Shown here in pieces: positions 1 through 49,326 of a stretch of DNA of 64,000 nucleotides; within the stretch, counting starts at the first letter, position 1, and every line of letters starts with the position of its first letter. The DNA is from Macrostomum lignano. Taxonomy: Eukaryota. Below the pieces are notes generated by a model that ran no database searches, was not told where the DNA came from, and worked only from the letters and a program-made list of their open reading frames with translations. Location: the NCBI GenBank assembly GCA_002269645.1, contig NIVC01000006.1, forward strand, positions 682,001-746,000, in the 5' to 3' direction. Position numbers and translations under genes: made by a program.

Positions 1-3000
1 GTATTAGGATGGCTCTTCCGCGACGTGCACTTTGCATCGGATAGTACGGAGAAGAATCTGGATCGTCTGGACCACCACCATCATCGCCACCACCGCCACC
101 ACCTCCACCACCACCACCGCCATCATCGCCACCACCACCACCGCCACCATCGCCACCACCACCACCGCCATCTCCGCCGTGGCCGTTGCCTCTGTCGCTT
201 GGCTCCTCCACAGGAGAGTTGGATGGATCGCCGCTCTCTTCAGGTTGGTAGCCGCAGCCAGTTTCGCTATCAATACTTAATCCACTTTCGCTTCCTTCGC
301 TTGTTGGAGCGCGCTGTAATCTAAAATTATAATATTTTTTATTGTCTGTGTTTGAATACTAATCCAAAGTAACTACAAGATCAAGATGCAATAGCAAATA
401 ACTTACATCAAGCGTGAACAGTTGAGGTGACCCGAAAACTTCGCCCATTGATAAGCGTTCATATTCCTCTCTCCGGTCAGGCGCCAATAGTTCGCGTCTT
501 TCATCAACTCTCCGAATATTTCAATGACCTCGATGTGGCCGCAGCGAGCAGCCCAGATCAGAGGTGTGTTGCCGAAGCAATCTTTCAGCCATAAATTTGC
601 TCCGAAGTCACACAACATTTTGAAAGTTCCTGCGTGTCCCTTTTTCGCTGCGTGGACGGCAGCTGAGTATTTAAAAACGTCCTGAAAAACAATTGCATTT
701 TCTTAGGGTTTCATTCATACCAAAAAGGTTTAAATTTTTAACCTCACCTGGCAATCTATATCAGCTTGCATTTTGATGAGCTGCTCCAAAACAGATTTCT
801 GGTCATTTATGGCCGCCAGAATCAGCGGGGTTTGTCGAAGATTATCTTCTCTATTTACTTCTGTCGTCATAGTGCTAGCGTTGTTTGTCAATATTTTCTC
901 AAACGCTATCAGGACTTCTTTGTGGCCTTTGAGGGCGGCCCAGGAAATGGCTGTCCGACCCATTACATCCTGGACACTGACCAGGGATGTGTCAGAATTT
1001 CTATTGAGCAGCGATAGTACCAGGTCATGTTTGCCTCTGGCGGATGCGATTGTTAGCAGAGTCTGATTCAAAGTCCCAAACTTGTGGGCTGTATTCTCCT
1101 GAGATCTGCACAGGGCTGCAAGCTGCGCGTCCGACCACTTATCCGGGGACGCAGAGCTGAATATCCTAATTTGTGATGCGATAGATGGATGTAATGGATG
1201 TGATACGAGTATCTTTCACTTTTGATAGCCCCAGATGTATAGCATTTTATTTGTCTATCTAATAAAATAACAATTAAAACATCAAATGGAATTTTATTAT
1301 CAATGGTTGCTAATAAAGTTTGTACTTAAGAGATTAAAGCAGTGGTATCTGCGGATGTCTAAAACCAAGAAACATGGCTAACAGTGACAATAACTTACTG
1401 CACATCGTCAGATGCAGCGCTATTCAAGAAGAATTTCTTGGTCAGACTGGTGACTGCAGAAGCTTCAGTACCGAATTTTTCGGATCCACCTTTCATCTCG
1501 GGTATGCCCAGCCGCCTGTTCACCTCTGCCACCACGTTCACAATGTGCTCTTTGCTGAATATTTCCTCTTGAACGACGGAGCATAGAACCTCAGCAAGCG
1601 ATCCATTCTCTCCTAGTGAGCCACCGCGGCAGAGAAGAAAGTCTTTCTCAGGAAGTTTAAACGACGTCTCTTCCAGCGGGCAGGCGTTCAGGGTTTCAGG
1701 CTGCTGCTCAGTCTGAACAAAGAAGATCTTCGGTTTGCCCTTTAGAAAGGAGCACTGGTTGACTCGGAACCTGGCCACGATGTCTCTTACTTCGACCTCT
1801 TCACCGTCGCTAGCGAAGAAGCTGGCACCGGTCCCGTGTCCGATGATGAAGCACACGAAGCTGCCCATGTCGGGGAGATCGGACCTGACTATTTTGTTGA
1901 CCGCTGCAAAGATGTCAGCGCTAGTAGGCTTACTTGTGCATTGTTGGATTGTAAAACCAAGGTTTTCGAAGGTGTCGGTAATTATTTTAACTTCCTTCTG
2001 TTGGTTGTGGCTTGAGCTGCGATTGTAGGTCTCGACACTTATTACCAAGCACAGGCCTTTTGCCGTAATGATCTCTGCGTATATGTCGCTTTCCGGCTTG
2101 TTTGAAGTTGAACTGAATGAAAAGGTGCCAAATAGATTTCCATATATTTTCGCCACAATGATTCGAAAGATTCAAATTTTAGCAAAGATTTGTGTGAAGC
2201 TGACTTACGCGACAACTTGCTCTTTGCCAATCCTAACATGCGAATGAGCCCCATCAAACTGTAGCTCATGTTCCTCTTGGCCTTCCGTTTCAAACGCAGG
2301 AACCTTGCACGTCAGTCCTCCTTGTTCTGGTTTAGAAAAAATGTTTAAGTTAGTACTAGATGTACGTCACCTGGTGCCAGTGGCCAAAATATCCGGTCAA
2401 TTCGATATTCAAGCCTAGCCTTGTACGAAAAGCATGCATGTAGTTGCTTTACCTTTATTATAGATGAGAGGGTGCTTCATCAACTCAATAGCCAGCGTCC
2501 GGTCACGAGCTTGTTTTTTAGTGCATTTGTCATAGAAATCTTTCAGATTAGCCGAGCAACTTTCCGGAAGCACTGGAGCCCCCTGCCGTTCCACCCGGCG
2601 AACAATGGCCAGCATGTTCTTGCACTCCCAGTAGGGCCGTTTGGCGATCACCATCTGGTAGATCACGCAGCCGAACGCCCACACATCGGAGGCGCAGCTA
2701 TAGGGAGGGTCCTCGGTCTCAGAAGACAGGAACATCTCAGGCGCCATGAAGTGCGGGTCGCCTCTCTCCCCAGTGGACGGATGCTCCGTTACTGTTTGGA
2801 GAATCTGGATGGCCAGACCGAAATTGACGATCACAATTCGATCGCCCGGACAAACGAGCACCGTCTTGCAGTTGATGTTGCGGTGAATCACCGGATCGTT
2901 GAGACCGTGCAAATATGAAAGGGCGTCGCATATCTGAAATCAGTCGGTGATTCAGGATTTTAATATCGTAGTTTAAATAAGAATGGTGTAAGAAAGCAGC

Positions 3001-3556
3001 CGAACACGTTTTTAAAACCATTGCCAATTTTTACTGTCGTTTAAAAAAGTGGTCATGGACTTCTTAGTAAAGTCGTGTATTTTTTTATTAGCTCATTAGC
3101 TCGTAGAAGTCATTAAGACCCTTCGAGTACCCTTCAAGCCCTGGCTGGGTTCATGGCATAACAAACTTTCGATAATGTACAATTTTACAATTATTTATTA
3201 CGCACCTGTCTTGTAAGATTACAAATGCTCTTCTCAGGCAAGCCTTGTTGGGCGGTGATATGTCGTTCCAGAGTTACCGGTCCCGAAAGCAAGCTCATCT
3301 GTACGGTCACGCACATCTGCTCCTTGTCCACCATGATGCGCTTGAATTTGACCACGTTTTTGTGATCCAATGCGCACAGTTTCTTAGCCTCTTTGTCGCA
3401 AGCCTTAGTCAGAGTTTCTAGCTTATCATGAGCTCCAGCTTCGACAAGATGCCATGGCAAGCGGATTTGTTTTACAGCCTGCAGTTGCTCTGCCTCGCCC
3501 ACCGCTTCGGCGTAAGTTTCGCCTCGATCGCCTCTCGATAGAAGCTCCCGGACCAT
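1..3556 (-). CDS. Multidomain pseudokinase - pseudo-caspase - ankyrin repeats - Gly linker - caspase-like protein (paralog L; 3' end runs off the window)
   Basis: Hand-spliced exons on minus strand: 3556-3206, 2933-2453, 2326-2209, 2112-1399, 1156-748, 681-407, 320-<1. All introns are GT-AG and all junctions are in frame (phases 0,1,2,2,0,2), giving 889 codons in the window. Kinase motifs QAVK, HRNINCKT, NFG, FMAPE, DVWAFG. Caspase motifs KGLCLVI, FVCFIIGHG, LKGKPKIFFVQ. Ankyrin motifs GRTAISWAA, QTPLILAA, GNTPLIWAARCGH. Last exon reads ...GGGGDDGGGPDDPDSSPYYPMQSARRGRAILI, which is the typical caspase p20 N-terminus. Confidence 0.88.
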
Positions 3557-4780
3557 TGCTTGGCTTAGGGGAGAGTTTCAAAACAGTGTTTTACAGCTTC
3601 ATGTGAGCTTCAAATTTACCTGCAATTTTTTGCTAGTGCAGTTAATGTTTAACTGCAGTGTTTCTGCTTAGCCGTAAGAAAGTGGCAAGGCTTTTTAAAA
3701 GCTGTCTAGCTATAGTGTCATTGGTAGCAAGCTTACTCTGCCAAATAGAGGCTTGTTTCTCTTGCCATTATAATACCTTATCTGTCTTTTCTCTTTTCTA
3801 CCCCTATTTTTGTATGAAGAATTAAGTACAGTCTAGACAAGTACTTGCGTTGTAGGGTATAGACTGGGAGAGAAGTAATCTGGGGGAGGGTTAATGTACA
3901 TTAAGTACAGCACATTGCTGTCAGGCAGCATTCTGGAGAGTTTTACACACTGCTTTGCATATCAAATTGAAAAGAAAAGAAAAATAGTACAGCAAGAGTT
4001 GCATTTCATACCCATTTGTGCAGACGTTGTCTCTTGGCTCTCATGCCATTCCATAGCCAGCAATTCTTATCTATAGAACTTGCTCTCGTAGCATGGAGGC
4101 TTAAAACCAACTGGTTTGTAGTTAGAAATTTGGTACCTTATTCTACTGTACAGCGCTTTCCGCCTAGCTAGCTAGTGCAGCCAGTCCCTATCTGTCCTAT
4201 TTTAGAAAGAAACAGTCATTTGGTATATGAATAATAGCTAATTTCTCACTTAGTAGCTATATGTGAATTCGCTATTGGTAATTTCAACTAGCGGCCGTTG
4301 CTCACAGAAGCTTGTTGCAAACTTTTTTTGCCTGTAAAAAACTGTTGAAACATAACAACTAGTGAGAATTAAACAATCGCGAGTGCGACTGTTTGTGGCT
4401 TAAATACAAGGTAAGAAGCTTCACGACAAGTGCTTATTAGCTAATCGTACCAGCTTTTGTAGGTCCAAGCGACATGTAGCCCCTGTCAGTGACTCCGGGA
4501 GGCGTGGCGGGCCACATCATCCACGCCGAGTCACACTGCCCACAGGCGGAGTAGGAGGTGCTGCTGCTAGCGCTGCAAACGGGGAGGACAGACATGGGCT
4601 CGGCGCTTGTTAAACTGCCTTCTGGCTGACGACCGCGCACGCTCAAGCCTTCACACACGCTCTGTGGCGTGACGCTGCATTATACTGTTTTATTATCGTG
4701 TATGCATATAGGCTATCTGGGGTTAAATAATTATCCTATCTGTTGCTTTGTCCGAAGATATTTACGTTGACAAAAGACCG

Positions 4781-6144
4781 CAATGAGGCGGAAGGCCTTT
4801 TATTTTCAATAGATGTGCGGTGCGCACATGTGGCGTGGCGTGATTGGCTACGCCAACCCCCCTGGCTTAGCCAGCCGGCTAGCGCGGTACGCCACCACCC
4901 CACCTCAGCTAGACAGAGGTTGGCGGGGGGGGGGGTTTCCAGTGCGGCTGCACTGGTGCTGCCGGTCGCGTAGTCTGGCCGCCACACAGCTCCCCCCAAC
5001 ACCGAGCTAGGCCCCGAATGTCAGGTGATAGCCGTGCCGAGGAGCGGGCGCCGAAAGCATCGGAGGCAGAGGCGCCGAAGGCTGCGGAGCTGCAGAGGAG
5101 CGGGCGCAGAAATCAGCCGGGCCCCGAAGGCGGCAGGAGTGCGAGATGAGCGCAGAAGGCTGCCAGGGCACGAGGCGGGCGCCGAAGGTGGCAGAGGCGC
5201 GAGGCGGGCGCCGAAGGCGGCAGGGGCGCGAGGCGGGCGCCGAAGGTGGCAGAGGCGCGAGGCGGGCGCCGAAAACGGCAGGGGCGCGAGGCAGGCGCCG
5301 AAGGCGGCAGGGCGCCGAGCGGGCGCCGATGGCAGCAGGGCGCCGAGCGGGCACCAGGCGGGCGCCGAAAGCAGCAGGGGTGCCAGGCGGGCGCCGATGG
5401 CAGCAGGGGTGCCAGGCGGGCGCCGATGGCAGCAGGGGCGTCAGGCGGACGCCGATGGCAGCAGGGGCGTCGGCGGGCGCCGAAGTCGGCAGCGCGCCAG
5501 GAGGGCGCCAAAGGCAGCAGCAGGGGCGCGCGGCCGGACCAGACCAGAGGCAATCGACAGTCAGTTGCCGCCGTGAGCCGGGTCGATGCTCCTGCACAGA
5601 GGCTGGGGACGTTAGGCTAGCAGCAGCGGTGCTAACCTAGAGTTTGCTGCAGCGTGTGGCGCTGGTTGGTCCAACGCGGGGGCCGAAAAGCGAGACCCCA
5701 GGAGCTACCGGGGGGCGGGCTGACTGGGCCGATTCGTGCGGGGTACTGCTGTGGCTGCGGGGCTGCTGTGCTGCCGTTGCAGTCGGCCAAGGCAGTTGGC
5801 TGCCAGGACCGCACAGGGCCGACCAGGTAGGCCCAGCGTTCCGCGCTGGGAGTCGGGCTCACCAATGAGGCGGAAGGCCTTTTATTTTCAATAGATGTTG
5901 TGGCAGCGAAGATTGTGCACTGCGTTGCGCGTATATATTTATATGATTGAAAACAGCGCGAGATTATTGAGGGGCCTAGGGAGGTGCGCACATGTGGCGT
6001 GGCGTGATTGGCTACGCCAACCCCCCCCCCCCTGGCTTAGCCAGCCGGCTAGCGCGGTGCGCCACCACCCCACCTCAGCTAGACAGAGGTTGGCGGGGGG
6101 GGTTTCCAGTGCGGCTGCACTGGTGCTGCCGGTCGCGTAGTCTG
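4781..6144 (+). mobile_element. Element bounded by ~197-bp direct repeats (4781-4977 and 5863-6144, the second with an ~85-bp insertion) around a GC-rich core; type unresolved
   Basis: CAATGAGGCGGAAGGCCTTTTATTTTCAATAGATGT...GGTCGCGTAGTCTG occurs twice almost identically. No clear TG..CA ends, TSD or coding capacity seen. Confidence 0.5.
5040..5525. repeat. GC-rich ~29-bp minisatellite (GAGGCGGGCGCCGAAGGCGGCAGGGGCGC-like)
   Basis: Repeated AGGCGGGCGCCGA core visible; explains the low-complexity ORFs in several frames on both strands. Confidence 0.85.
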
Positions 6145-6178
6145 CCCCCCACAGCAACCTATTTTCCTTCACTTCAGC

Positions 6179-9100
6179 ATGGTCAAAAACTACTCAATCG
6201 GGGAACAGATCGGTCGAGGCGAGTATGCTAGTGTCCATGCCGTCACCATCAAGGACCGGAGCCCAACAGCCACTTGTGTAAAGCTGATCAAACTGCCAAC
6301 GAACTCTGAGCAAGTCTTAGACAAAAAAGAGCTCACTGAATTGGTAGAAAAACACAAGCCACTCAGAGAACTGAAACACCGGAACTTGATTCAAATTGAA
6401 GACCTTCATGTCATTCAACAAGACTACTCTATCGCAGTGTTCATGGAGCGGTTTCAAGGAAAAACATTGGAATATTTACTGAAAACAAAGGGTGCCATCA
6501 CCCAAGAAGATAAGATTCGGCACTACTCCAAGCAGGTGAGCACTGCATGGATTTCTATGACGTGTTAATTCACAAGCCCCATAACCAAACAGTCTCTGAC
6601 TTATTTCTAATTAATTAGTTGGTTTTTTATTTAATTAAGCACAATTCTCAACTTCTCTGCAGATCTGTGAAGCTTTGAAGTATCTTCACCACGACTTAAA
6701 GGACCCCGTCATTCACAGAAACATCTGCAGTAAAACAGTTATGATAGACGACAACGATTTAGTTAAGTTAATTGACTTTGGCATCTCCATTCAGCTGATT
6801 GATGCGGTGAGCCATCAGGTGACGCAGTGTCCGAGAGGCCATCCGAACTACATGGCTCCAGAGTTGTTCTTGGAGGAATCCCGCTCTGAAGTCCAGAGCC
6901 TCTACAGTCGGGGCTCAGACATCTGGGCTTTCGGTTGCGTTGTGTACGAGATGACCACTGGTGCGAAGCCGCTTGGAGATTGCAGAAACATGCTGGCCAT
7001 AGTTAACAAAATCAAATATCACGGAGCTCCAAACCTACCGGAGGCGAGCTCTGAGCAGCTGAGAGACTTCTATAAAGGCTGCATGAGAATGAATAGGAAA
7101 GAGAGAATGTCGGCAGCAGATCTGCTACGACACGAGTTTCTCAGTCCTGGTATGCAATTTTATGGTTTTTTGAGCTACATGTATATTTTTCACTGTTATT
7201 TTGGCTAGTTGTTAACTGATATAAGCTCTCTTTTAGTATATGACAAACACTGGGACAATGTCCGTCTGCTGAGCAGAGGAGGCTTCGCAGAAATTCACGA
7301 GGCTCTCACGGACAAGGGTATCCGTTGCGCCGTAAAAACTCTGAAGCTGCCCCTTCAACTCGGTGATCAACGGGACAAAGTGCAGAGAGAAACCGATCGA
7401 GCTATTGAAAGCGAGATGAACCTGTGCAGATTACGGCATGACAACATCGTAAAGATCTTTGACATTTTGCAGCCAGAAATTGCCACGGTTGTTGTGTTCA
7501 TGGAGCTGCTGGATGGCAAAACTTTGGAATTGGTGATAGATGGAAAACCACTGGATGAGGGAATGATTCGTCTTTTCGCTTCACAAGTAAGCATGAATAC
7601 TGAGTTGAATTATCAGGTTTGCTCATTATCCTGATCGCATTACTTTCGTTTACTCATATTTCAGATCTGCAGCGCACTTAGCTACATGCACAATCAGCCA
7701 GAAAAATCAGCCGTGATTCACAGAGACCTCAACTGCTCAAATATCGTGATTCTAGATGATAACAAGGTCAAGTTGATTGATTTTGGCTTATCGCACAGGC
7801 TAGGAACGTCGATTAGTCACAGCACCGCCTCGTCAGTGAAGGGCACGCTGAACTTCATGGCGCCGGAGCTACTGGGTGACGACGAAAAAATTGTGTACAG
7901 CACAGCATCAGATGTCTGGGCATTCGGTTGCGCCGTCTACCAGATGGCCACTGGAGAGCGGCCGTTCGAGAAAATTAAAAACCTAAATCGTCTTATTCAC
8001 ACTCTGAAAGAGCAAGGCGCCCAATTATTGCCAGATTCTTGTTCGAGTCTGCTGAAAGATTTCTATGCCAGTTGCGTTATGCGCCAGCGCTTGGAGAGGG
8101 CGTCCGCTATAACGTTGATGAAGCACGAGTTTCTGACTTTCAAGTAAGTCTGCTTGCATTTTGTCTATTAAAGTTCATATTTTTGTATCAACGATGGCTC
8201 TGTATTTTTGTACTTTTAGTCGAGCATATTGTTTCTTTTAATTCCTTTAATTAGAGCCTCGGAGTACGAGGATGAAGACCGATACGAATCCAGTGCTAGC
8301 CAGAAAGGAATGTGCGCAATCATTGACATGCTCCCATCTGGCTCGGACTCAAAACTCTCTGCTAAAATCAGCAAAAGTTTTGAAAAGTTCGATTTCATCG
8401 TCAAGTCGCTACCAGACGCAACCTGTCAAACCGCTTGGAGCTTCATCGGGGACATCGCAAACAGTCAAGAGCTTGCAGACTCGAAATGCTTTGTTTGTTT
8501 TGTTATAGCTTCCGGTTCGAACGGACATCTGTACTCAGCTGACAATGATGAGAGCATTGAAATCAGAGATCTGCTTGCCAGGTTTCGCTCTAGCCAGTGT
8601 CCCAGCCTGAAGGACAAGCCGAAGCTTTTCTTCATTCAGGCCGCGCAACCGGCCAGTGCAGCCGCCGGCTTGGACGAATCCACGACGCGAATTCGAGACG
8701 ATGACTTTCTGGTTTGCATCAACGATGCCGACCTGGATTCATCGTTTGTCGGGACATTGTGCACCGTTTTAGAAGAGGACAAATTTAGCGACTTAGACAT
8801 TGAAGGAGTTGTGGATGAGGTGAACAATCGCCTAAAACTGGAACCGTTGGTTAAAGCGAAAAACCGGGCTCTTAAATCCATGTCGGAAGCAGTTTCCACT
8901 TTGACGAAGAAATTTTACCTGAAGCCGGAACCGGTGAAACCGGATCCCAGGTGAGCTTTTTCGTTGTTTTAGAGGCTTATTGAGAAGAATGCACAAAAAT
9001 TAGCTAAATCAGCAACACTAATTGCTGGTATTCGAGGAGCACTTCATCCTGCAGACAAACAAGTTTCCAGTACCACCACCGAACTAACCTACTTATTAAC

Positions 9101-12100
9101 CTACTATTATTAACCTATTCGTCCTACTTTAACCTAATAAAGTAGGTTAGGTTAAGTTAAAGTAGGTTAGGTTAAAGTAGGTTAAAGTAGATTAGGTTAA
9201 AGTAGGTTAAAGTAGGTTAGGTTAAAGTAGGTTTATATTTTAAATATCATATTTAAAATGATCATATTTTAAATTATATATTAAACGATCATATTTTAAA
9301 TGATCGATACTCAATGAAACGATTGGGCCCGATGATGCCATCTTTGATCACTTCCACCACAAGAGCTTTATTTAAAACAGTTGTTTAGTGAATAGGAGGG
9401 ATTTCTTATTCTTCCCATTGATTCATACTGTTTAGCATAGAAAGATAACGAATATTTCAGAGCGGAGTCGCCAGAAAAGTGGGACGATGAACAATTGAAG
9501 AGGCTAATAGAGGAGGAGGCAAGTCAATGCGCGAACCCGGACTTCACCAGCCAAAAGTACGGCCCGTTAGGACAGACGCTGCTGTCGATCGCAGCAGACA
9601 AGGATAGCAGCGAGTTAGTCAAGCTTGCGCTCCAGACGGCGGCCACTTTTCCATCCATTCACTCAGATCTCGACGTGATGGGCAGGACGGCCCTTTCCTG
9701 CGCCGCAGCCAAAGGATCAGACGCGGTTCTGGCCGCTTTCGAGCAGGCATTCATCGATGCGGCCGATGTTCAGAAATCAGTGGTCAACGAAGCCAACTAT
9801 ATGCGCCAGACTCCTATCATTGTGGCAGCCAAGCAAAACAGGACGAATGTTCTCGAGAAGTTGGTCCGGATGGGAGCAGATATCAATCAGAAGGTGAGGC
9901 TGTGTTGATACTCACTAGTTTTACTCAACTATCAATCACAAAAATGTCCTATCAACTCTGAATCACAAAAACAGACAGAGACAGAAAGAAACAATCATGA
10001 TAGAAACCAAAGGCTGATTCAGTTCAAGAAGCAACTTTATCGCCTTTATCAAAGAGCTCAGGAACTTATACAGCGCAGACACATCCGCCCGGCCTCTGCA
10101 CGACCAAGCATGATGTTCTCTTTTACTGCCTCGATGACGGCCTTCTTAAAGCCATTGAAATGAAACAAATATGTTTGCGTTTTGCGATTGCCTACCTGCT
10201 TTCACGTTGGGTTTTTAGGAATTTTGAGACGCTTTAGTCCCGGTTCCGTCAGCAAGCTCTACTGCAGCATGGCCGGTTCCAAGGACCAGGCTGCCAAAAT
10301 TTAATTTTCAAAACAGTCGATTCTCTTTCGAAGTGTAGAACCCTTTTGCACTTTTTTCCGTATTTCAAGCACCTGGCAGGCAATTCGAATTCTTCCGATC
10401 AACTTGCTGGCTTCATGCTGCTCACATAATCCTTATCCAGATGCATCTTGCGGCAAAACGTTTGAAGGGTTTTAACTCTGGGTCTATAGTCGTCTGATCT
10501 GTATGACCTTTAGCATTTGTAAACATTCGATATTTGGCTACAAGTGGCCACTGGCCAGTTAGTGTTTATGACGTATGGCGTCTCTACGCTCGTACATTTC
10601 ATTATATTTGATTTCGTAAAAATTCTGCACATGCAGCTTATATATATGAATTTGCATTTCAGGATATTGTAGAAGCCACCGCATTAATCTACGCGGCTAA
10701 ATTCGGATTTGTTGACGCGGTGCGCAAGCTGCTGGAACTCGGCGCCGATGCAGCTCTCGCAGACCGTTCGGATCAAACACCGCTAATTTGGGCAGCTCGC
10801 TGTGGCCACACCGATGTTATCAACGCTCTATCTGAAAAGTTCAATAGTCTGGAGCCCTGGAACCACCGGAGCACGCGGTTGCGCAACTTAACCGCGCTTG
10901 AATGGGCTAAGCTCTGCGGCCATGATGCCACTGCGGACAGGATTCAGCAGCTGTAAGTAATTGGCGACGTAATTTTTGTTCCAATGGCTGAATGCTCTGT
11001 AGAAATCTGCACCTCCTGCTTTAATGGGCGTAGGAAATCGGCCGTCACGAGGGTCCTCCGTTTCCACCAGACCATTTAAAATTTTTCCGTGAATATCCTC
11101 TAAGCTACTTTAAACTTTTTCCTGTCTTGAACCCTCACAATGACACCCAGGAGCCATCCATGATCCTGTTAAGCCATTAAGAAGTTTTTAATTATTTAAA
11201 TATTTTAAATGATCGATGCAAACTATTTCAGAATTCAACAGATAACCGGAGCGACACAGGAGGCGGACGCCACTACCGACCCACAATCAAGGGGTGGCGG
11301 TGGCGGTGATGACGGTGCCAGTAGTGAAGCGACAGGAACTTCCGCCGGAAGTAGCCACGGAAGCGGAGGAAGCGGCGGCGGAGCCGTTGGTGGAGGAGGT
11401 GGTGCTGATGAAGTTGGTGGAAGGGGTGCCGGTGGCGGAGGTGCCGGTGGCGGAGGTGGTGGTGGCGGAGGTGGTGGTGGCGGAGGTGGCGGTGGCGGAG
11501 GTGGTGGTGGCTGGCCTATTTACCATATGAACAACCCAGTCAGAGGCCTAGCAATAGTTATCAGTCGGAACACGATTCCACCAAATGCAGGTTTTCAGAA
11601 CATACATTGGATGCCGGATCAGCAGACTCAATCTTTTGTCGGTTGTTTAAGCGACCTACGCTTCGATTTCTTAGTGCTACCAAATATTCCGAGAAACCTT
11701 TATTATAATCTCCGAACCACGGTACTCAATTGGCCGACGTATGCCACCTCTGATTCTCTTCTCCTCTGCCTGATGTCTTATGGCGAACACGGCCGAGTGT
11801 ATGACTGCAATGGAGAGCGTGTTGAGCTGGAAACAATGTTTCGACAGTTCAGAGAGTGTCCACTGCTCTCTGGTAAGCCGAAAATATTCATGGTCGATGC
11901 TGGTCGTGACATTCCTCATGAGAGACTGGTGTTGGAGCAGGCAATTCAGGAGAACGCGGGCCAGCACCAGGACTGTAATTACATTTACAGTGTTGTAAAA
12001 GGAAACGCCTGCTACCAAGAGGTAGAGAACGGCTTTTGCTTCATGCAGTCCATGGTGAATTTACTGCGCTGGCCAAGTTTCGATTCAGCCACGGAAGATT

Positions 12101-12210
12101 TTGCGTCCTTTCTGACGAAAGTCGTCAGCGACGTGTCGAACAAGTGCACAGCAAAGCAGATTGTCTGCCACACGAGCACCTTGCAGCGCCATATCATTTT
12201 AGGAAATTAA
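6179..12210 (+). CDS. 1356-aa tandem kinase (pseudokinase + kinase) - pseudo-caspase - ankyrin repeats - poly-Gly - pseudo-caspase protein (paralog R)
   Basis: Exons 6179-6535, 6663-7149, 7237-7586, 7665-8143, 8255-8950, 9461-9893, 10663-10952, 11232-12210 total 4071 nt (1357 codons). Every GT-AG junction keeps frame. Kinase 1: GRGEYA, CVK, HRNICSKT, DFG, YMAPE. Kinase 2: CAVK, HRDLNCSN, DFG, GTLNFMAPE. Caspase A: FVCFVIASG, LKDKPKLFFIQAAQ. Ankyrins: GRTALSCAA, QTPIIVAA, QTPLIWAARCGH. Caspase B: YHMNNPVRGLAIVI, LMSYG, LSGKPKIFMVDAGRD. Confidence 0.9.
9065..9310. repeat. Degenerate AGGTT(AAAGT) simple repeat with an upstream inverted copy, followed by AT-rich ATATTTTAAATGATC repeats (intron 5 of paralog R)
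   Basis: AACCTAC/CCTACTTTAACCTAA units precede AGTAGGTTAGGTTAAAGTAGGTT units. Confidence 0.65.
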
Positions 12211-13372
12211 CCCGAGAACTCGTAATTTTTATGACGCTGATCCTGTAAGGTAAAATGCATAAAGTATATTTACTTTTATAATTTCATCTGGTGACAGTGT
12301 CTCGTTATTTTCATCCAGTTGCTTTTCCTCCAACTATCTAAAAATTGTTTTAATGTGGGGATCCAATATAAACCCAGATGATACTACTTCAAACTAATCA
12401 AACAGACCCGTGTGGCAGTGAGAAAACAAATTTAAGTTAAGCCTAAATCCTAACCGACGACTGATATTATAATTTTCGTATACTGCGCACTTCGATTGCT
12501 TGTTGGGTTTTAACATTAACATTTATTGTTGTTATCTTTTGTTTTTTCGATGCTTTTATGATGACGTCAATGTATACATTTGATTCACCTACATATCCTA
12601 CTTTGTATACTGAATGATTTTTTTGTATGTTTTAAAAAAATTGTTATAGACAAAGCAGTTTAACATAATTAAATCTTTATTAGGAATAATGTATTGAACT
12701 CAAAAAGTTGTGTATTAGATTGCATCTACAAACTACATGTAATTGGAACTTGCAATGCCCCTGAATATACAGCCGCTGGTTTTGTTTGCTAATGAGGGAC
12801 AGAGGCTCCCTCCATCGTGTGAATTTCCCGCCGAAACTATACGGAAAATGTTACAATTTTATACCGCACCCAATTTGTTTGAATGCGCCGCACCCCCACC
12901 CCCTTTTACTAAAAATACAAGAACGTTTTTTCACCCGTGAATTCTAACTTGGCCCTTGCTGGCAGCGCTCATTTTTTTCTCTAATAATACCTAAGTAACT
13001 GACGGATCTTTCCAATATAGTTTTTCGTATTAGCTAGAATCGGAAAAGCAAGTGCAAATTGGCTGGGTGGGAAAACCAAGTCGTGCAGTAGTTTTGCTTC
13101 AGGGCGCCAAATGAGTGCCTGCGGCGCCAATATGAGTGCCTGCGGCGCTAAAATGCTAAATTGAGTGCGGCGCCAAAATGAGGCTAGTGCTAACAGCACC
13201 GCTTTTCAAAATAATGTAGGAATTTAGCCATGTAGACTTCTTGGCTTTGTCCCCCACTATAAAATCCATGGTGACGCCCCTGGCTGTAATTATCTTAAAA
13301 AGTGCTAATTAAAAATCAATCTTATAATATCTTAAAAATCTGGGGACCCCACATACAGGTGGTGAGACATGT

Positions 13373-14025
13373 CAGTGGCGTATACTCGAGAATTTTATTT
13401 GCAGGATTTGCAACATTACAGAGACCAGTATTTGGTCTCTAGGTTAATACCTCGATCGCTTGTTGGGCGCCCCTGTCTCTTGGTGGGTGCCCCTGTCTCT
13501 TGGTGGGCGCCCCTGTCTCTTGGTGGGCGCCCCTGTCTCTTGGTGGGCGCCCCTGTCTCTTGGTGGGCGCCCATATCTCTTGGTGGGCGCCCCTGTCTCT
13601 TGGTGGGCGCCCCTGTCTCTTGGTGGGCGCCCATATCTCTTGGTGGGCGCCCCTGTCTCTTGGTGGGCGCCCCTGTCTCTTGGTGGGCGCCCCTGTCTCT
13701 TGGTGGGCGCCCCTATCTCTTGGTGGGCGCCCCTGTCTCTTGGTGGGCGCCCATATCTCTTGGTGGGTGCCCCTGTCTCTTGGTGGGCGCCCCTGTCTCT
13801 TGGTGGGCGCCCCTGTCTCTTGGTGGGCGCCCCTGTCTCTTGTTGGGCGCCCATATCTCTTGGTGGGCGCCCCTGATCTCTTCTAACAAGAGAAGGTAAT
13901 TAAACACGAGCCCCTCTGTCATTCGTCAAGCTCGCGGTTACCTCTTATTTAGTTTCTTGGGGATTACAATTATTATAAAGGGGCCATTGGGGGGGGCACC
14001 TCCACCCTAGCTGCGTACGCCACTG
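13373..14025. mobile_element. hAT-like MITE (653 bp) with an internal 20-bp minisatellite
   Basis: 10-bp TIR CAGTGGCGTA...TACGCCACTG; perfect 8-bp TSD AGACATGT at 13365-13372 and 14026-14033. Confidence 0.85.
13445..13875. repeat. 20-bp minisatellite TTGGTGGGCGCCCCTGTCTC, about 21 copies
   Basis: Directly visible tandem units inside the MITE. Confidence 0.95.
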
Positions 14026-14396
14026 AGACATGTACAGCAGTAAGTTTTATTCTGCTGTACTTGTAAATATACCGGCATAATGTACTGCACATGTACACTG
14101 CAGTCTTTCACAAGCACTTGGACGATCGATTTAGTCTCATCTGTATTGTGGTCCAAAAGTGCAATGTACCTATACGAACATGTACTCTCAAGGACATCAA
14201 AAGTTTTTGGATTCTAAATTTAAATGTACTAGCTCTTTAATTAGGCTACTAGGGGGCAGAGCAGCCTATAGGCTCTCGCTCCATGACCTCTGGTTTATTG
14301 ATTCCCTGCGCAACCGCATTTGGGGTTGTGAAACGAAAAATTGGCCATGTGTGTTTTGTCGCCATGAGGGCCAACCCCCAATAAAGCACAGGGAGT

Positions 14397-14552
14397 GTAC
14401 ATGCCTGATGATTAGAAAGACAGTCAGGGCCGCTGTACACCTTGTGTGAGCTTTGTGTTAGACGTGACTGTGTACGCTCGTATAATATTAGCTTGCTTGT
14501 ATGTGCATCAGGAGAGTCAGTGGAATGGGAGGAACTGCCTCAGCGCTGGTTG
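14397..14552 (+). repeat. Dispersed repeat family copy 1 (related copies at 34948-35089 + and 44660-44771 -)
   Basis: Shared motifs GTACATGCCTGA..., GTCAGGGCCG.TGTACACC and GAGTCAGTGGAATGGG..GAA.TG.CTCAGCGCTGGTTG. Confidence 0.65.
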
Positions 14553-15757
14553 TGGGGCGATATCGCAAAAGAATTTTCGCCAGATTTTTGCGAGTATTAT
14601 TACATTTTTGTTACATTTTTGTACAAATATTATTGCATCTGAATATTATCGTATTATTTATATTTTAGCGAACGCTGAGCTTTTTGGTTGGACCGTGGAC
14701 CGATTTGCTCAGCTGCCATCGGTTGGGATTTTTTTCCAATTTTAATACGAATGTACATGCAGAGTTTATGCAACACCGCCAGATCCCCAGTGAAAACTCT
14801 GCAGCTTCTGACGAAAACTTAGACGAAAACCCCAGTTTTTGTGTCCTTTTTGTATTACTCTTCTTTAATCCTTCACATTTCGGGACTTGAGTGGATATAG
14901 AATTTCTTCGTTAATTTTCTAACTTTTACTCGCCATAACTCCTCAAACTCCCATCGATGACGGTCTACATATCTTCTCAACGCAACTTGAAATTAACACA
15001 TGAGATATGACAGTTGCTACGTGTAGATGTAAACCCAAATTTCTTACCACATATCTAGTATCGCACCCAGTGGTACTATTAATTTGCTATTAAAAATTCG
15101 AAACACTGCACGTACATACGCAAATAAGCCGCGAATTTTCCCTCCCTCATTTATAAACAGCAACGCTAAAAGTAGCGCCTTTAATTACAAGCCTTTGAGG
15201 GCCAAATTTGTCTTCCGAAACTCACTAGATACTTATAAGCAGAGATTTTAGATTTTTCTTAGCTCTGAGTAACCTACCATACCATCAGAAATATATCTTG
15301 CTAAAACTAAAACGCTACTATTAGTAGTAAGTAGTATAACAATAACATTGGTTGGTGCCCGTGAGTCGTGGGTGGGACATCGGTTAAAAATTACAAGTTA
15401 AACGGTAATTTGAATTTAATGTTGGCAAGCCTGCAGAAAATCTTAAAGCAAATCATAAAAGCAGTAGCATCTGAAATCAGTTATTTACTCCCACGACTAT
15501 CTGTTTTTAAAGTTTGAATACCTCAGCAGTCCGAGATTCTTTATATGCATAGCAAATTTGTTTTAACCGTAAAACAATTTTAAATGCAGTTAATTTTTGA
15601 AGAAAAATATGTACAAATCATCATCATGATTTTTGCAGCAGGTGCACCATTCACGTTAGCATTAAATTGTTGTGTTTATTATTAGAACCAAAAATTGAAA
15701 GCTCAACATAAACATTTTTTAGTTTAAAAAAAAAACAAATCGAAATATTTAAAGGTC

Positions 15758-18700: not shown

Positions 18701-21700
18701 GCATTTTTGTTAAAACTAAGTCGCACAGCCAACAAAATTTTGGAGGTTGCGCATGTATGAGCAAGACACTTAACTCTGCATTGCTTTAGTTCACCCAGCT
18801 ATAAAATGGGTGCTAGTATTAGCTGGGATAATTGAGGGTGTATGTGGCAACCCCCTAGTCCTTGGACTGAACAGCTATATATGGCCTTCAGATGTGCCAT
18901 GCAATAGCTATGGCTGAGCTGTTGGTTGCACATCTGCTTATTATGGCAGATATAATCAATTATTATTATAATAATTATTATTATTAATTATATTATTGTT
19001 AATATTGCAATATAGAACTTATAAAGGTTGAATTTAGCCAAAATAGTAATTAAAAAATATAGTATCAAAGTAACAATCTTTAAATTTTTCTAAGATTTGT
19101 TAGTTGAATATTCCTAACTACATATTGTGTAATACTAGTGCCAATGTGAAAGGAAAATAAAATTATTTTAAAAAAATTTCTTTCCTCACAAAACTTTTAG
19201 CCTGCTTACTTTGGACCAGTGTGCCAATAATACTTTTGAAAACATTGGTCAGCAAGTGCAGAAGTATTTTACTAAACAAGATGGATTCAAGGTTGGCACT
19301 GCTTTGGTAAGTAGAAGAATGCTTCATATGCCATTTTTAATACTTTAATGGTAGAATTTGTGTTCAATTGTTAAAGGCAGGTGGGTGAAAGGTTGTGAAG
19401 GGAGGTCAGTGAAGGGAGGTGGGTAAAGGGAGGTGGATGAAGGGAGATGGAATGATGGATGAAAGGAGGTGGGTGAAGGGAGGTGGGTGAAGGGAGGTGG
19501 TGGAGGGAGGTAGGTAAGGGAGGTGGTGAAGGGAGGTGGGTGAATGGAGGTGGTGAAGGGAGGTGGGTGAATGGAGGTGGTGAAGGGAGGTGGGGGAAGG
19601 GAGGTGGGTGAACGGAAGTGAGGTTAAAAATGAACACCGACAGTTTTTGCATTCTCATCTCGCATTCTCTTCGCCAGGTGTTGCTCCTGCAGAACCCCGA
19701 TCTGCTGCCTAATCGGATGCAACAGCTGGTGGCTCTCTACCTGCTCTTGGAGTTGACCCGAGTTGACCCGCCCAATGTGAACCCATTTCAACCCGCGTTT
19801 GTTTACGCCATGCGATCGGACGAGAACGATACGAGGCATTTTCGCGTTCCCTGCCTGCCGCTGCAGGAGCGCGTGTTCTTGTACAGCCTGCTGCAGAGCA
19901 CCCACGCCAGCGGCCAGCCTTCTAGGGAACTCTTGAAGAAAACCCCTCAGCAGGTTTGTAAAACTGTTGGTGTCTGTCATCTTGAAATGCATGAGTCAGT
20001 GTTTCATTAATCATTTCGAGGCCATAAATCATATATCTGCAACCAAAAATCATCATTCAGAAACTAAAAATCATCATTCAGAAACCGAAATCATCATTCA
20101 GAAACTAAAAATCATCATTCAGAAGCCATAAATCATCATTCAGAAGCCATAAATCATCATTCAGAAGCCATAAATCATCATTCAGAAGCCATAAATCATC
20201 ATTCAGAAGCCATAAATCATCATTCAGAAACTATAAATCATCATCAAAATCCAAGAATCATCATTCAGAAACCATAAATCATCATTCAGAAACCATAAAT
20301 CATCATTCAGAAACCATAAATCATCATTCAGAAACCATAAATCATCATTCAGAAGCCATAAATCATCATTCAGAAGCCATAAATCATCATTCAGAAGCCA
20401 TAAATCATCATTCAGAAGCCATAAATCATTACTCAGAAACCATAAATCATCATTCAGAAACAAAAAATCATCATTCAGAAACCATAAATCATCATTCAGA
20501 AACCATAAATCATCATTCAGAAACCATAAATCATCATTCAGAAACCATAAATCATCATTCAGAAGCCATAAATCATCATTCAGAAGCCATAAATCATCAT
20601 TCAGAAGCCATAAATCATCATTCAGAAACTATAAATCATCATCAAAATCCAAGAATCATCATTCAGAAACCATAAATCATCATTCAGAAACCATAAATCA
20701 TCATTCAGAAACCATAAATCATCATTCAGAAACCATAAATCATCATTCAGAAACAAAAAATCATCATTCAGAAACCATAAATCATCATTCAGAAACTATA
20801 AATCATCATCAAAATCCAAGAATCATCATTCAGAAACCATAAATCATCATTCAGAAACCATAAATCATCATTCAGAAACCATAAATCATCATTCAGAAAC
20901 AAAAAATCATCATTCAGAAACCATAAATCATTACTCAGAAACCATAAATCATCATTCAAAAACCATAAATCATCATTCAGAAACCATAAATCATCATTCA
21001 GAAACCATAAATCATTACTCAGAAACCATAAATCATCATTCAAAAACCATAAATCATCATTCAGAAACCATAAATCATTACTCAGAAACCATAAACCATC
21101 ATTCAAAAACCATAAATCATCATTCAGAAACCATAAATCATAATTCAGAAACCATAAATCATCATTCAGAAACCATAAATCATTACTCAGAAACCATAAA
21201 TCATCATTCAGAAACCATAAATCATCATTCAGAAACCATAAATCATCATTCAGAAACAAAAAATCATCATTCAGAAACCATAAATCATTACTCAGAAACC
21301 ATAAATCATCATTCAAAAACCATAAATCATCATTCAGAAACCATAAATCATCATTCAGAAACCATAAATCATTACTCAGAAACCATAAATCATCATTCAA
21401 AAACCATAAATCATCATTCAGAAACCATAAATCATTACTCAGAAACCATAAACCATCATTCAAAAACCATAAATCATCATTCAGAAACCATAAATCATTA
21501 CTCAGAAACCATAAATCATCATTCAGAAACCATAAATCATTACTCAGAAACCATAAATCATCATTCAGAAACCATAAATCATCATTCAGAAACCATAAAT
21601 CATCATTCAGAAACCATAAATCATCATTCAGAAACCATAAATCATCATTCAGAAACAAAAAATCATCATTCAGAAACCATAAATCATTACTCAGAAACCA

Positions 21701-23612
21701 TAAATCATCATTCAAAAACCATAAATCATCATTCAGAAACCATAAATCATCATTCAGAAACCATAAATCATCATTCAGAAACAAAAAATCATCATTCAGA
21801 AACCATAAATCATCATTCAGAAACCATAAATCATCATTCAGAAACCATAAATCATCATTCAGAAACAAAAAATCATCATTCAGAAACCATAAATCATTAC
21901 TCAGAAACCATAAATCATCATTCAAAAACCATAAATCATCATTCAGAAACCATAAATCATTACTCAGAAACCATAAATCATCATTCAAAAACCATAAATC
22001 ATCATTCAGAAACCATAAATCATCATTCAGAAACCATAAATCATCATTCAGAAACCATAAATCATCATTCAGAAACCATAAATCATCATTCAGAAACCAT
22101 AAATCATCATTCAGAAACAAAAAATCATCATTCAGAAACCATAAATCATTACTCAGAAACCATAAATCATCATTCAAAAACCATAAATCATCATTCAGAA
22201 ACCATAAATCATAATTCAGAAACCATAAATCATTACTCAGAAACCATAAATCATCATTCAAAAACCATAAATCATCATTCAGAAACCATAAATCATCATT
22301 CAGACGCCATAAATTATCCCCAAATCACCGCAGATAGCCAACAGTGTATTCCCGCCCAACGTGATTCCCAGCGAGCTGGACCTGAGTTTCCTAGAAAGCC
22401 CATACGCGGAGCGGGCCAAGGAGATGCCGGTGGTGAGTCGGGTTGCTATGCCGTGCGTCCTGTCCGATCCCGAGCGCCGTCTGGCCTCGATGGAATCTTA
22501 CAGCGGCTCGGGCAGCTCTGCGGAGGCCCAGCGCCAGGTGCTGGACTCGCTGCTCACTGGTGACCAGGCAGCTGTCCGATCTCACCTGCGGCCGGAGTTT
22601 CTCCTGCTGGCGCCGCCGCTGCACAGCGTCGGGATCGAGGACGAACTCGTGTGGATGTCGCCGACTGGCCTTGAGCACACCGCTCAGTGGGACGCCTCTA
22701 TGTGCCAGAGCGGCTCTTCCGGGGGTGAGTGACATTTGAAGGTCAAACTAGTTATTTTCTAAGCTGCTAAAATGCTACAGGTGTCGAATCTCACCCAACA
22801 TCACCTGAGAATCTCACCCAACCCCACCTGAGAATCTCACCCAACCCCATCTGAGAATCTCACCCAACCCCATCTGAGAATCTCACCCAACCTCGTCTAA
22901 TCTCACCCAACCCCACCTGTGAATCTCACCCAACCTCACCTGAGAATCTCACCCAACCCCTATCCTCCCAGCCGAGACCCGGAAGCTGATGGTGCGGGCC
23001 TTCAAGCAGACTCTGCAACAGTCGCAGATTCGCCAGCTAAACGAGGCCATCTCCCAGGATCCCAAGCTGATCAGCCTAAGCGGCATGTCTCCATCCCGGC
23101 TGCCCGAACTGGTTGAGCACAATCCCCTGGTTGCTATCGAGGTGCTGCTCACCCTGATGAAGGCCAGCTCGCCCCAAGTCACGGACTATTTCTCTGTCCT
23201 AGTGAACATGGAGATGTCCCTGCACAGCATGGAGGTTGTCAACCGCCTGACAACCAGTGTTGAACTGCCTGCGGAGTTCATCCACCTGTACATCAGCAAC
23301 TGCATATCGTCGTGCGAGTCAACCAAGGACAAGTACATGCAGAACAGGCTGGTCAGGCTGGTGTGCGTGTTCCTGCAGTCGCTGATCCGCAATAAGATTA
23401 TTGACGTCAAGAATATCTACATCGAGGTGCAGGCTTTCTGCATCGAGTTCAACCGCATCCGGGAGGCTGCTGGCCTGTTCCGGCTGCTAAAATCCTTGGA
23501 GTCCAGCGATGGCAGCGTCGACTCCGCCGCCGCTTCTGCCGCTCTGGCTGCTGGCGGCGGCGGCCCGGGTTCGAATCCGCCTAGCGCCGCCACCACGCCT
23601 TCGAAGCCGTAG
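15758..23612 (+). CDS. CNOT11: CCR4-NOT complex subunit 11 (C2orf29 / DUF2363), 483 aa
   Basis: Exons 15758-15795, 19201-19306, 19678-19953, 22334-22724, 22972-23612 total 1452 nt, all in frame. N-terminus [12 protein letters not shown]...TFE...[23 protein letters not shown] and C-terminus [16 protein letters not shown]...[59 protein letters not shown] match the recognisable CNOT11 sequence. Confidence 0.95.
16940..17592. mobile_element. MITE (653 bp) with 8-bp TSD (hAT-like), CNOT11 intron 1
   Basis: 16-bp TIR CCATAGTGCGGAAGGA...TCCTTCCGCACTATGG; TSD CCTAGGCC at 16932-16939 and 17593-17600; subterminal GTA(C/T)GACA motifs. Confidence 0.8.
18124..18420. mobile_element. hAT-like MITE family A, copy 1 (297 bp)
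   Basis: TIR CATACATGCGCAAC / GTTGCGCATGTGTG; 8-bp TSD TGTAGCCT at 18116-18123 and 18421-18428. Confidence 0.85.
18514..18759. mobile_element. hAT-like MITE family A, copy 2 (246 bp, opposite orientation)
   Basis: Perfect 14-bp TIR CATACATGCGCAAC...GTTGCGCATGTATG; TSD AGCAAGAC at 18506-18513 and 18760-18767; internal sequence is the reverse complement of copy 1. Confidence 0.88.
19375..19622. repeat. Purine/G-rich simple repeat (GAAGGGAGGTGGGT-like), CNOT11 intron 2
   Basis: Directly visible tandem units. Confidence 0.85.
20030..22312. repeat. 21-bp minisatellite AAATCATCATTCAGAAACCAT, about 108 copies, filling CNOT11 intron 3
   Basis: Directly visible; produces the spurious (NDDLWFL)n ORFs. 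Confidence 0.97.
22790..22960. repeat. ~20-bp repeat TGAGAATCTCACCCAACCCC, CNOT11 intron 4
   Basis: About 8 units visible. Confidence 0.85.
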
Positions 23613-44639: not shown

Positions 44640-45289
44640 CAGTACAGTGGATGCGGTTCCACGACCATCGCTGAGGCAATTCTGCCCATTCCGCTGACTC
44701 CGGAGCACATGCAAGCGCGCCAATACACACGCTCACACAGGGTGTACACCTTCTAATCGTCAGGCATGTACAGTCTCTACGTGCCTTGGAACTTGGATTT
44801 TCAGCTTATGCTATTCAAAGAAGCAAGCTTATTTTAAATGACGACTGTTTCGTTAAAATTTGTTGGAAAGTAAAACAGTGTTCTGCATCGCAACTAATCA
44901 AGGTCGAATTTGACGTACAAATTGTCTAAAATATAGAATTTTCAAGTATAATCAACTTGATTTTATTTTTATTATTTCCATCTGCTAAAGCTAAATTGTT
45001 TTGTTATTGTGTACGGCTCTTCAGGCACAATTTAAATTTGCTTTGATGGGTGTTTTTTAAAGACCCGATGTGAATTTTATTGGCTGTCTGTCTGTAATCT
45101 GCACACGAACAATTTTTCTATTTAATCAATGTAGTTTAATTAAATTGTTATTAAATAAATCTGCTATACCATCAGTTCTGATAATCTCCTACTAATTCAC
45201 GTTTACTGTAAATCTTCAATAGTGGTATTGTACGGAAAAAAAATTGATTCGTAAATACATGTATTTTACCGCAAAAGTTTTTGAACGGA

Positions 45290-48455: not shown

Positions 48456-48957
48456 ATGCAAGCGTCAGGAATAATAGCAAACTTAGCCTTAATTGCACTT
48501 TGTCTGTTTGCCTTCCACGGCATAATTGGTAAGTTTTCAAGTCTGGTATGCGGAGTCAAGTTTTGTGTTAATTGAGCACCATTTTTATTGACATTAAAAA
48601 CGAATTTGCAGGGCCAACTGAGGCAGCGGACTGCTCAACTGTCACCTGCAACAACGGCGGCACCTGCAACAACTTTACAGTCAGCCCGCCCTGCCTCTGC
48701 CCGCTGCCCTACATTGCACCGTACTGCTCAGCTGCTGCAGACTACTGCTTCACCCTGCAGCCTGACAAGGGCATCAACGCACTGCCTGTGTGCCAGAATG
48801 GCGGCACCTGCACTCTGACCTACACCGATCCGTACTTTAACTGCAGCTGCTCCGATGGCTACACAGGTTAATGAGCTAATGCCTAGTCTGTTTCTTTGTC
48901 TGTCTGTCTGTCTGTCTGTCTGCTGTCTGTCTGTCTGTCTGTCTGTGTGTCTGTGTT

Positions 48958-49036
<79 letters not shown>

Positions 49037-49129: not shown

Positions 49130-49192
<63 letters not shown>

Positions 49193-49265: not shown

Positions 49266-49326
<61 letters not shown>

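Follow-up and report, generated by a model that had tools for sequence, protein, structure and literature searches.

A pseudokinase–kinase tandem of apparent fusion type, joined to pseudocaspases and ankyrin repeats, in the flatworm Macrostomum lignano

A 64,000-nucleotide stretch of the Macrostomum lignano genome (NCBI GenBank assembly GCA_002269645.1, contig NIVC01000006.1, positions 682,001 to 746,000; hereafter the window, in whose numbering positions are given) carries on its plus strand a gene of eight exons (6179-12210), the first four of which (6179-8143) encode two consecutive kinase domains. The coding frame of the spliced gene is uninterrupted over 4071 nt, i.e., 1356 codons and a stop codon, and all seven coding introns have canonical GT-AG sites. 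The protein of 1356 amino acids consists, in this order, of a pseudokinase (K1), a kinase (K2), a pseudocaspase (C1), ankyrin (ANK) repeats, a glycine-rich run and a second pseudocaspase (C2). An original prediction, made from the DNA letters, had placed a pseudokinase followed by a kinase at 6179-8143. Sequence and spliced translation confirm this at exactly these positions of the plus strand, both domains are complete and lie in one reading frame, and the same K1-K2 junction is present in an independent database model, UniProt A0A1I8GSV6 (P0001). The prediction had also proposed that the tandem arose by internal duplication; this part did not hold. Judged from their sequences, K1 and K2 come from different, long-separated branches of a Macrostomum-restricted expansion of STE-like kinases.

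The two kinase domains are each encoded by two exons. Exon 1 (6179-6535) contains the start codon and the N-lobe of K1 and ends with SKQ in phase 0; intron 1 (6536-6662; 127 nt, GT-AG, phase 0) is located at Q119|I120-C121, and exon 2 (6663-7149) supplies the C-lobe with HRNICSKT (6714-6737), DFG (6774-6782) and APE and ends in phase 1. Exon 3 (7237-7586) is entered in phase 1, encodes the N-lobe of K2 with SRGGFA, AVK (K315) and the alphaC sequence IESEMNL, and ends with ASQ in phase 0. It is followed by intron 3 (7587-7664; 78 nt, GT-AG, phase 0) at Q398|I399-C400 and by exon 4 (7665-8143), which encodes the C-lobe of K2 with HRDLNCSN (7719-7742), DFG, GTLNFMAPE, DVWAFGC and HEF and is left in phase 2. 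C1 is encoded by exon 5 (8255-8950; Pfam Peptidase_C14, E=1e-19), in which the caspase motifs SHG and QACRG are replaced by ASG (8505-8525) and QAAQP (8631-8651). Exons 6 (9461-9893) and 7 (10663-10952) encode the ANK repeats (Pfam Ank_2, E=5e-35) and have the same splice sites in P0001. Exon 8 (11232-12210) comprises a linker, the glycine-rich run (11290-11511), C2 (Peptidase_C14, E=8e-17) and the stop codon; in C2, SHG is changed to SYG (11773-11793) and QACRG to DAGRD (11890-11910). Intron 5 contains two adjoining 15-bp AT-rich, microsatellite-like arrays (9148-9305, plus strand).

A0A1I8GSV6 is 100% identical to the translation across exons 1 to 7, the K1-K2 junction included. For exon 8, however, it takes the weaker acceptor 11260 instead of 11232, which shifts the frame into the glycine-rich run and leads to a stop at 11530; its tail (VAVAVMTVPVV) is read from a GGN repeat, and C2 is thereby missed. 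The acceptor at 11232 was preferred because it has the better pyrimidine tract, keeps the Pfam-significant C2 in frame and agrees with where the exon begins in GENEA, P0005 and gene X, three paralogues introduced below. The public protein model of the gene is truncated in this way, and its second caspase-like domain has been hidden. At the other end, P0001 has an N-terminal extension (GPTS|MVKNYS at its junction) that maps to a probable 5' untranslated exon (5644-5826, plus strand; 5' limit approximate), whose donor (5826|gt) would be joined to the acceptor 6177-6178 directly abutting the ATG. Since P0001 and the window differ by 1 nt of frame in this exon, it is taken to be non-coding. Expression support for the gene consists of this database model with its apparent 5' untranslated exon only.

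Two other gene models were considered and rejected. An arrangement of K1 and K2 as two genes, or as exons used alternatively, is contradicted by A0A1I8GSV6, which independently joins K1 to K2; in addition, retention of intron 2 would lead to a stop codon at 7206-7208 and skipping of exons 3 and 4 to a frameshift, which argues against alternative K1 and K2 exons. Upstream ANK exons, as found in ANK-kinase genes, were likewise rejected, as the plus strand upstream is occupied only by a GC-rich minisatellite and a divergent neighbouring gene. The genome also holds another copy, P0002 (A0A1I8GSE8), with nearly identical K1 and K2 domains. This copy contains two out-of-frame blocks (amino acids 688-723 in C1 and 917-937 in the ANK region) and lacks some segments; the frame-shifted blocks may reflect an assembly or model error or a decaying duplicate.

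The divergent neighbour, GENEA (1-3556, minus strand), is a paralogue arranged head-to-head with the studied gene and is cut by the start of the window. It encodes a single pseudokinase, which is even more degenerate than K1 (HRNINCKT, and NFG for DFG), followed by a 118-nt linker exon (2326-2209), a pseudocaspase with GHG present and QTEQ in place of QACRG, ANK repeats, a glycine run and the start of C2. All of its splice sites are canonical, and a database copy, P0129, is 97% identical to it. A second head-to-head pair of the family is located at L004 on the same contig (NIVC01000006.1) and consists of P0005 and gene X (P0131/P0132), at L004 positions 3722-9283 (minus strand) and 10001-15043 (plus strand); the NCBI model of the plus-strand gene (583 amino acids) looks truncated. 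Divergent pairing of the genes thus appears to be conserved. The kinase-like domain of P0005 keeps the HRD aspartate (HRDVNCRT) and its C2 has SHG and QSCRD; gene X has HRQINPST and a canonical C2 with SHG and QACRG. All four genes have a common backbone of a kinase-like domain, C1, ANK repeats, a glycine-rich linker and C2. Neither gene of the L004 pair has K2, so that the K2 cassette is present in one of the four sampled genes. GENEA matches the studied gene in all intron positions and phases except for its 118-nt linker exon, which lies where the K2 exons sit and has the same phases as these (phase 1 in, phase 2 out). A short linker exon is likewise found in P0005; the phases given here are those determined in GENEA.

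K1 (exons 6179-6535 and 6663-7149, amino acids 1-281) is a clear member of the protein kinase family with a Pfam Pkinase score of 155 bits (E=2.7e-45; cut-off 31.7), and K1 and K2 cover the Pkinase profile (PF00069) from position 1 or 4 to 263. By sequence, a pseudokinase is defined by the absence of the VAIK lysine, the HRD aspartate or the DFG aspartate (PMC13519141). In the alignment, the catalytic loop of K1 (HRNICSKT, amino acids 137-144) has, as predicted, asparagine for the catalytic aspartate (N139) and threonine for the Mg-binding asparagine, and the position of the HRDxK lysine is occupied by cysteine. K1 is thus a pseudokinase by this definition (HRD to HRN), with the beta3 lysine (CVK, K35) and the DFG aspartate (D157) kept. 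A fourth catalytic element, the alphaC glutamate, is probably lost as well: His59 stands in its column, in which glutamate (ExxNL) is kept in the K2-containing clade described below, P0005 and gene X, and Pro61 lies within alphaC. Retained are the G-loop (GRGEYA), APE within a subdomain VIII of the sequence GHPNYMAPE, DIWAFGC and HEF. Identity to K2 is 44% in the C-lobe and 32% in the N-lobe, and the better conservation of the C-lobe fits retained interaction surfaces. The combination of HRN, a missing alphaC glutamate and a kept beta3 lysine is the same as in JAK2 JH2 and HER3, which bind ATP and regulate a partner kinase (PMC13519141). It could be argued that K1 is not dead and carries out unconventional phosphotransfer or another nucleotide-dependent activity, given that the G-loop, the beta3 lysine and the DFG aspartate are kept and that weak activity has been reported for some HRN pseudokinases (PMC13519141). 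However, with the catalytic aspartate, the Mg-binding asparagine, the HRDxK position and the alphaC glutamate all replaced and a proline placed in alphaC, residual activity of K1 is regarded as highly improbable.

K2 (exons 7237-7586 and 7665-8143, amino acids 282-558; Pfam Pkinase, E=1.1e-46, 160 bits against the same cut-off) keeps AVK, HRDLNCSN (amino acids 417-424), DFG and APE, as the prediction had stated, and also carries GTLNFMAPE, DVWAFGC and ERASAITLMKHEF. With K315, D419 and D437 in place, it does not fall under the sequence definition of a pseudokinase. The first glycine of its G-loop (SRGGFA) is replaced by serine, at a position where otherwise intact family members vary as well. 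The asparagine found in place of the HRDxK lysine had been taken as a reason to doubt the activity of K2. The substitution is indeed present, but it gives less cause for doubt than it first seemed: HRD[IL]NCxN is found throughout the 12 domains of the K2 clade, whereas the sister clade (P0008, P0022) and the outgroups keep HRDIK, which marks the exchange as old and maintained rather than as a private defect, and the active kinase LIMK1 has HRDLNSHN (PMC8750758). LIMK was not among the matches when the short catalytic loop was used as a query against the PDB. Taken from its motifs, K2 is probably active.

The assignment of both domains to STE/MAP3K-like kinases is fair as a statement of resemblance and tentative as a classification. 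Among solved structures, the best sequence matches include ASK1/MAP3K5, MAP3K2, TNIK and MAP4K4, with PLK2/3, WNK3 and TTK in the same range and all at about 30% identity; the top matches of K1 are ASK1 and MAP3K2, and K2 matches PLK2 best, with STE20-type kinases, MAP3K2 and ASK1 among the top. Subdomain VIII of K2 (GTLNFMAPE) conforms to the pattern G-T-x-x-[YWF]-M-A-P-E, for which K1 has GHPNYMAPE. An AlphaFold2 model of K1-K2 has kinase secondary structure in both halves, and its best fold matches (ASK1, MEKK2, MAP4K4 and MST4) all belong to the STE group, albeit from a low-confidence model; a Foldseek search with the model returned single STE-group kinase domains only and no two-domain template. 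ASK1 and other STE-group kinases are the best solved matches by both sequence and fold and have the GTxxYMAPE-type subdomain VIII in common with the studied protein, but they differ in the low identity, in the asparagine for the HRDxK lysine and in the ASK-type flanking domains, which the studied protein lacks. In a neighbour-joining tree the family forms a clade of its own (97% bootstrap), and the STE11 and ASK pair (98%) lies outside of it. An exhaustive phmmer search with K1 against 1.84 billion representatives revealed, outside M. lignano, no relative with an identity of more than about 36%; the foreign matches with better scores were generic multi-kinase proteins with 25-32% identity.

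Both kinase domains contain an intron at Q|IC, and the original prediction had read this as a trace of tandem duplication. The two introns (6536-6662 and 7587-7664) do have GT-AG sites and phase 0 and lie at aligned positions. However, every family gene checked (GENEA, P0005, gene X, P0007, P0012 and, in both of its domains, P0008) has an intron of phase 0 here, at Q|IC or Q|VC, and GENEA, P0007 and P0012 have it although they are single-kinase genes; the intron is therefore a family character. Neighbour-joining trees were calculated with 22 kinase domains and again with 23 after inclusion of gene X (500 bootstraps each, about 276 columns). In these trees K2 is placed inside a clade with 11 other M. 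lignano domains (93% bootstrap without and 98% with gene X), to which it is 51-59% identical and which come from ANK-kinase and ANK-kinase-pseudocaspase genes. K1 and K2 were sisters in none of the 500 replicates. K1 is 37% identical to K2 and 36-41% identical to the other members of the K2 clade (32% to the truncated P0019), and thus no closer to K2 than to most of them. Two tandem kinases of the family served as duplication controls: the two domains of P0008 are 55% identical and sisters in 86% of the replicates, and those of P0004 are 77.5% identical and fall into one subclade (100%), without being each other's closest relatives. Both halves of P0004 and P0008 are intact, and these tandems look like true internal duplications. 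A further type is seen in P0006, P0016 and P0017, in which an intact kinase follows a pseudokinase that has degenerated much further (HSS where HRD would stand and DFP for DFG).

Intragenic duplication is expected to leave two domains that are mutually closest in the tree and an intron specific to the two copies; K1 and K2 are not closest to each other, and the Q|IC intron is not specific to them. A duplication of the kinase segment within the gene, with subsequent decay of the upstream copy to a pseudokinase, would nevertheless account for the homology of K1 and K2 (39% identical by BLASTP, E=1e-60), their adjacency and their common intron position, and genuine cases exist in the family with P0004 and P0008; a very old event, from which K2-type exons later spread among other genes, is a conceivable form of this explanation. 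Against it stand the occurrence of the intron in single-kinase genes, the much higher identity of K2 to domains of 11 other genes than to K1, the complete lack of a K1-K2 sister pair in the bootstrap replicates, the 93-98% support of the K2 clade, and derived motifs which K1 shares with three paralogues that have no K2. These are the threonine in place of the Mg-binding asparagine (K1 HRNICSKT, GENEA HRNINCKT, P0005 HRDVNCRT and gene X HRQINPST), the sequence G[HD]PxxMAPE[LM]FL in K1, GENEA and P0005, for which gene X has GDTHYMAPELFL, and, in all four, C[KR]NML[AN]I. Internal duplication is consequently considered very unlikely. For plant tandem kinases, Klymiuk et al. used the criterion that domains on the same branch point to duplication and domains on separate branches to fusion (PMC6170490), and by this criterion the separate branches of K1 and K2 indicate a tandem of the fusion or exon-shuffling type. 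From motifs and trees, K1 appears to correspond to the one kinase-like "pro-domain" that GENEA, P0005 and gene X carry as kinase–pseudocaspase–ANK–caspase paralogues, and K2 to be of the type found in ANK–kinase genes. Whether K2 was gained or lost, the sequences place the split of K1 and K2 before the radiation of the family.

The remainder of the protein contains two caspase-like domains. C1 and C2 align to solved caspases over both p20 and p10 (C1 to caspase-7, C2 to caspase-3 and caspase-8) and have the caspase fold (MEROPS C14A, Pfam PF00656), but both are without the catalytic His/Cys dyad; since SHG and QACRG are replaced in both, they are regarded as pseudocaspases. C1 is closest to the C1 domain of P0005 (41%), followed by that of GENEA (33%). 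The cysteine is absent from the C1-type domains of all five genes examined (the studied gene, GENEA, P0005, P0007 and gene X), and its loss is thus old. The C2 dyad is intact in gene X and near-canonical in P0005; among the members sampled, a dead C2 and an added kinase are each seen in the studied gene alone. A word-indexed homologue search with C2 gave no match, and C2 was compared with the paralogues and with PDB caspases only. The succession of ANK repeats (amino acids ~830-1030) and C2 (~1125-1356) is that of the platyhelminth ANK-caspases (PMC11463336), and P0005 and gene X belong to the same species and family; the studied gene differs in that the dyad is missing from both of its caspase-like domains and that it encodes an extra, probably active kinase. 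Krasovec et al. placed one M. lignano caspase with a kinase pro-domain as sister to the ANK caspases (2024, PMC11463336), and the family described here is evidently this kinase-caspase lineage, as judged from its sequences. That study names one kinase pro-domain caspase and does not mention a tandem, pseudocaspases or head-to-head pairs, and no report of the K1-K2 tandem, the pseudocaspases or the paired gene arrangement was found in the literature searched. Flatworms have lost FADD, and parasitic lineages have also lost DED-caspases (PMC11463336).

As a whole, the locus is best explained by a fusion-type tandem in which K2 would be the sole live enzyme, K1 a regulator in cis and the dead caspase domains a means to recruit paralogues, an explanation to which we give roughly even chances. 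The only catalytic module would be K2, presumably a Ser/Thr kinase of the RD type whose activation loop is rich in Ser/Thr. K1 would act in cis on K2 as a nucleotide-binding, non-catalytic regulator or scaffold, as JAK JH2 and HER3 do for their partners. The dead caspase domains and the ANK repeats may recruit competent paralogues such as gene X (SHG and QACRG) or P0005 (SHG and QSCRD), and a caspase-type scaffold would thereby have been turned into a phosphorylation output modulating the activation of ANK-caspases.

Several points weigh against this explanation. Three of the four enzyme-like domains are dead, which could also mean decay, and the G-loop of K2 is degenerate (SxGxxA). The clade of K1 with GENEA, P0005 and gene X reaches a bootstrap of only 51-64%, a low value that is due to the long branch of K1. 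As K1 branches outside these three paralogues, a single gain of K2 in the studied gene and a single loss in the sister lineage are equally parsimonious from the tree alone. The C2 dyad of GENEA lies off the window, and its database copies P0129 and P0130 end before C2. The AlphaFold2 model of K1-K2 is poor (predicted local distance difference test 66.7, predicted template modelling score 0.47, alignment of four sequences) with untrustworthy domain packing, and because of this low confidence it says nothing on a cis interface. Kinase activity of K2, nucleotide binding by K1 and the contacts between K1 and K2 or between caspase domains are inferred from motifs.

The loss of catalytic residues in three of the four enzyme-like domains might also mean that the gene is a decaying, functionally irrelevant paralogue, and that K1, C1 and C2 died as selection was relaxed in a genome of recent expansion and partial polyploidy. 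The restriction of the family to M. lignano in the databases and the two frame-shifted blocks of P0002 would fit such a scenario. On the other hand, the frame of 1356 codons and the seven canonical introns are intact despite an identity of no more than 34-38% between K1 and its nearest relatives, i.e., a long divergence has passed without disruption; the structural motifs of K1 (APE, DIWAFGC and HEF) are kept, and conservation is higher in its C-lobe than in its N-lobe (44% versus 32% identity to K2); and the loss of the cysteine in C1-type domains, being common to five genes, is old and maintained. Between the two genomic copies, one of 164 residues differs in K1 and five of 259 in K2, differences that are too few to interpret. 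With the reading frame intact, the structural motifs retained and K1 differing no more than K2 between the copies, decay is disfavoured and appears unlikely.

Pseudokinase–kinase tandems are established regulatory devices, as known from JAKs, GCN2 and the tandem kinase proteins (TKPs) of plant resistance. To our knowledge, few such tandems have been described in animals, and none joined to caspase-fold domains was found in the literature searched. JAKs have the same order within one chain, with the pseudokinase JH2 preceding the kinase JH1, and besides the catalytic pattern described above, JH2 resembles K1 in the proposed role, the regulation of the adjacent kinase. However, JAKs are Tyr kinases and K1 and K2 are STE-like Ser/Thr kinases, so there is no homology at the subfamily level; the studied protein has no Pfam match to FERM or SH2 and is not a JAK, its downstream partners are caspase-like and ANK domains instead, and K1 keeps DFG where JAK2 JH2 has DPG. 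The plant TKPs (such as WTK1/Yr15, RPG1 and Pm24) likewise have two kinase domains, one of them dead, within one cytoplasmic protein of a lineage-specific family, and a fusion origin from different kinase branches follows from the same tree criterion (PMC6170490). The studied gene differs from them in being an animal gene with unrelated kinase subfamilies, in the order of pseudokinase and then kinase, and in the fusion to pseudocaspases and ANK repeats.

By analogy to the plant proteins, K1 might serve as an integrated decoy or sensor, so that a pathogen or stress factor which binds or modifies K1 would free K2 or the caspase-like scaffold for defence or cell death. The family has expanded in one lineage, its domains have been shuffled repeatedly, and the catalytic aspartate has been lost several times independently (HRN twice, HRQ once, and HSS/DFP in P0006); such a pattern is often seen in genes of innate immunity. 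Fusion and duplication both give rise to plant TKPs, which have been suggested to act as decoys (PMC6170490, PMC13519141). The argument is one of analogy only, and a decoy function would be compatible with K1 regulating K2 in cis rather than exclusive of it. We hold the probability of a decoy role to be low.

cFLIP(L) is a pseudocaspase paralogue of caspase-8 and pairs with it. In the same manner, the studied protein has caspase folds without the catalytic cysteine alongside competent paralogues, and one related paralogue directly adjoins its gene; however, it is without a DED, has two pseudocaspases in addition to kinases and ANK repeats, and its heterodimerisation is only inferred. A more far-reaching and rather improbable reading is that of a new kind of cell-death or defence regulator, a single polypeptide that unites the principles of RIPK, caspase-8 and cFLIP. 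The dead caspase domains would then heterodimerise with the active ANK-caspases of the paralogues, and K2, regulated by K1, would phosphorylate these paralogues or the substrates of these, so that kinase signalling would gate caspase activation. The gene pair would in this case have evolved as a Macrostomum-specific module of an enzyme and its regulator.

The surroundings of the gene are rich in repeats. The 2.6 kb between the divergent genes are GC-rich (~60%) and contain direct repeats of 174 bp with 93% identity (4819-4986 and 5983-6153), which flank a 29-bp minisatellite (5118-5534). Translations of these intergenic repeats appear in the predicted proteins P0001 (at the N-terminus) and P0010 (between ANK and kinase), where an untranslated region or a repeat has probably been mis-read as coding sequence. 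Long tandem arrays are located at 13459-13882, 20789-22261, 45216-47347, 48896-49540 and 58273-59556 and give rise to long spurious open reading frames on both strands; one of them is a 20-bp satellite with 21 copies and 93% identity, and the others were seen only as long repetitive open reading frames with NDDLWFL, SLQYPAVPV and LSVC or DRQT units. Two open reading frames in the window are unrelated to the family: one at 22989-23612 (plus strand) encodes a CNOT11 domain (E=3.6e-52), and an exon-sized one at 60139-60576 (minus strand) has a weak match to the putative serine esterase family DUF676 (E=7.6e-06). Rfam and tRNA scans of the window returned no hits.

The family provides a natural series for studying the origin and function of pseudoenzymes, as domains that are dead in the studied gene are alive in sister genes, and it presents duplication-type and fusion-type tandems side by side. 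M. lignano is a laboratory flatworm for which RNA interference and transgenesis are available, and the idea that a kinase has been placed onto an ANK-caspase scaffold is therefore testable in the animal itself. The finding thus bears on the question of how cell-death pathways have been rebuilt in flatworms.

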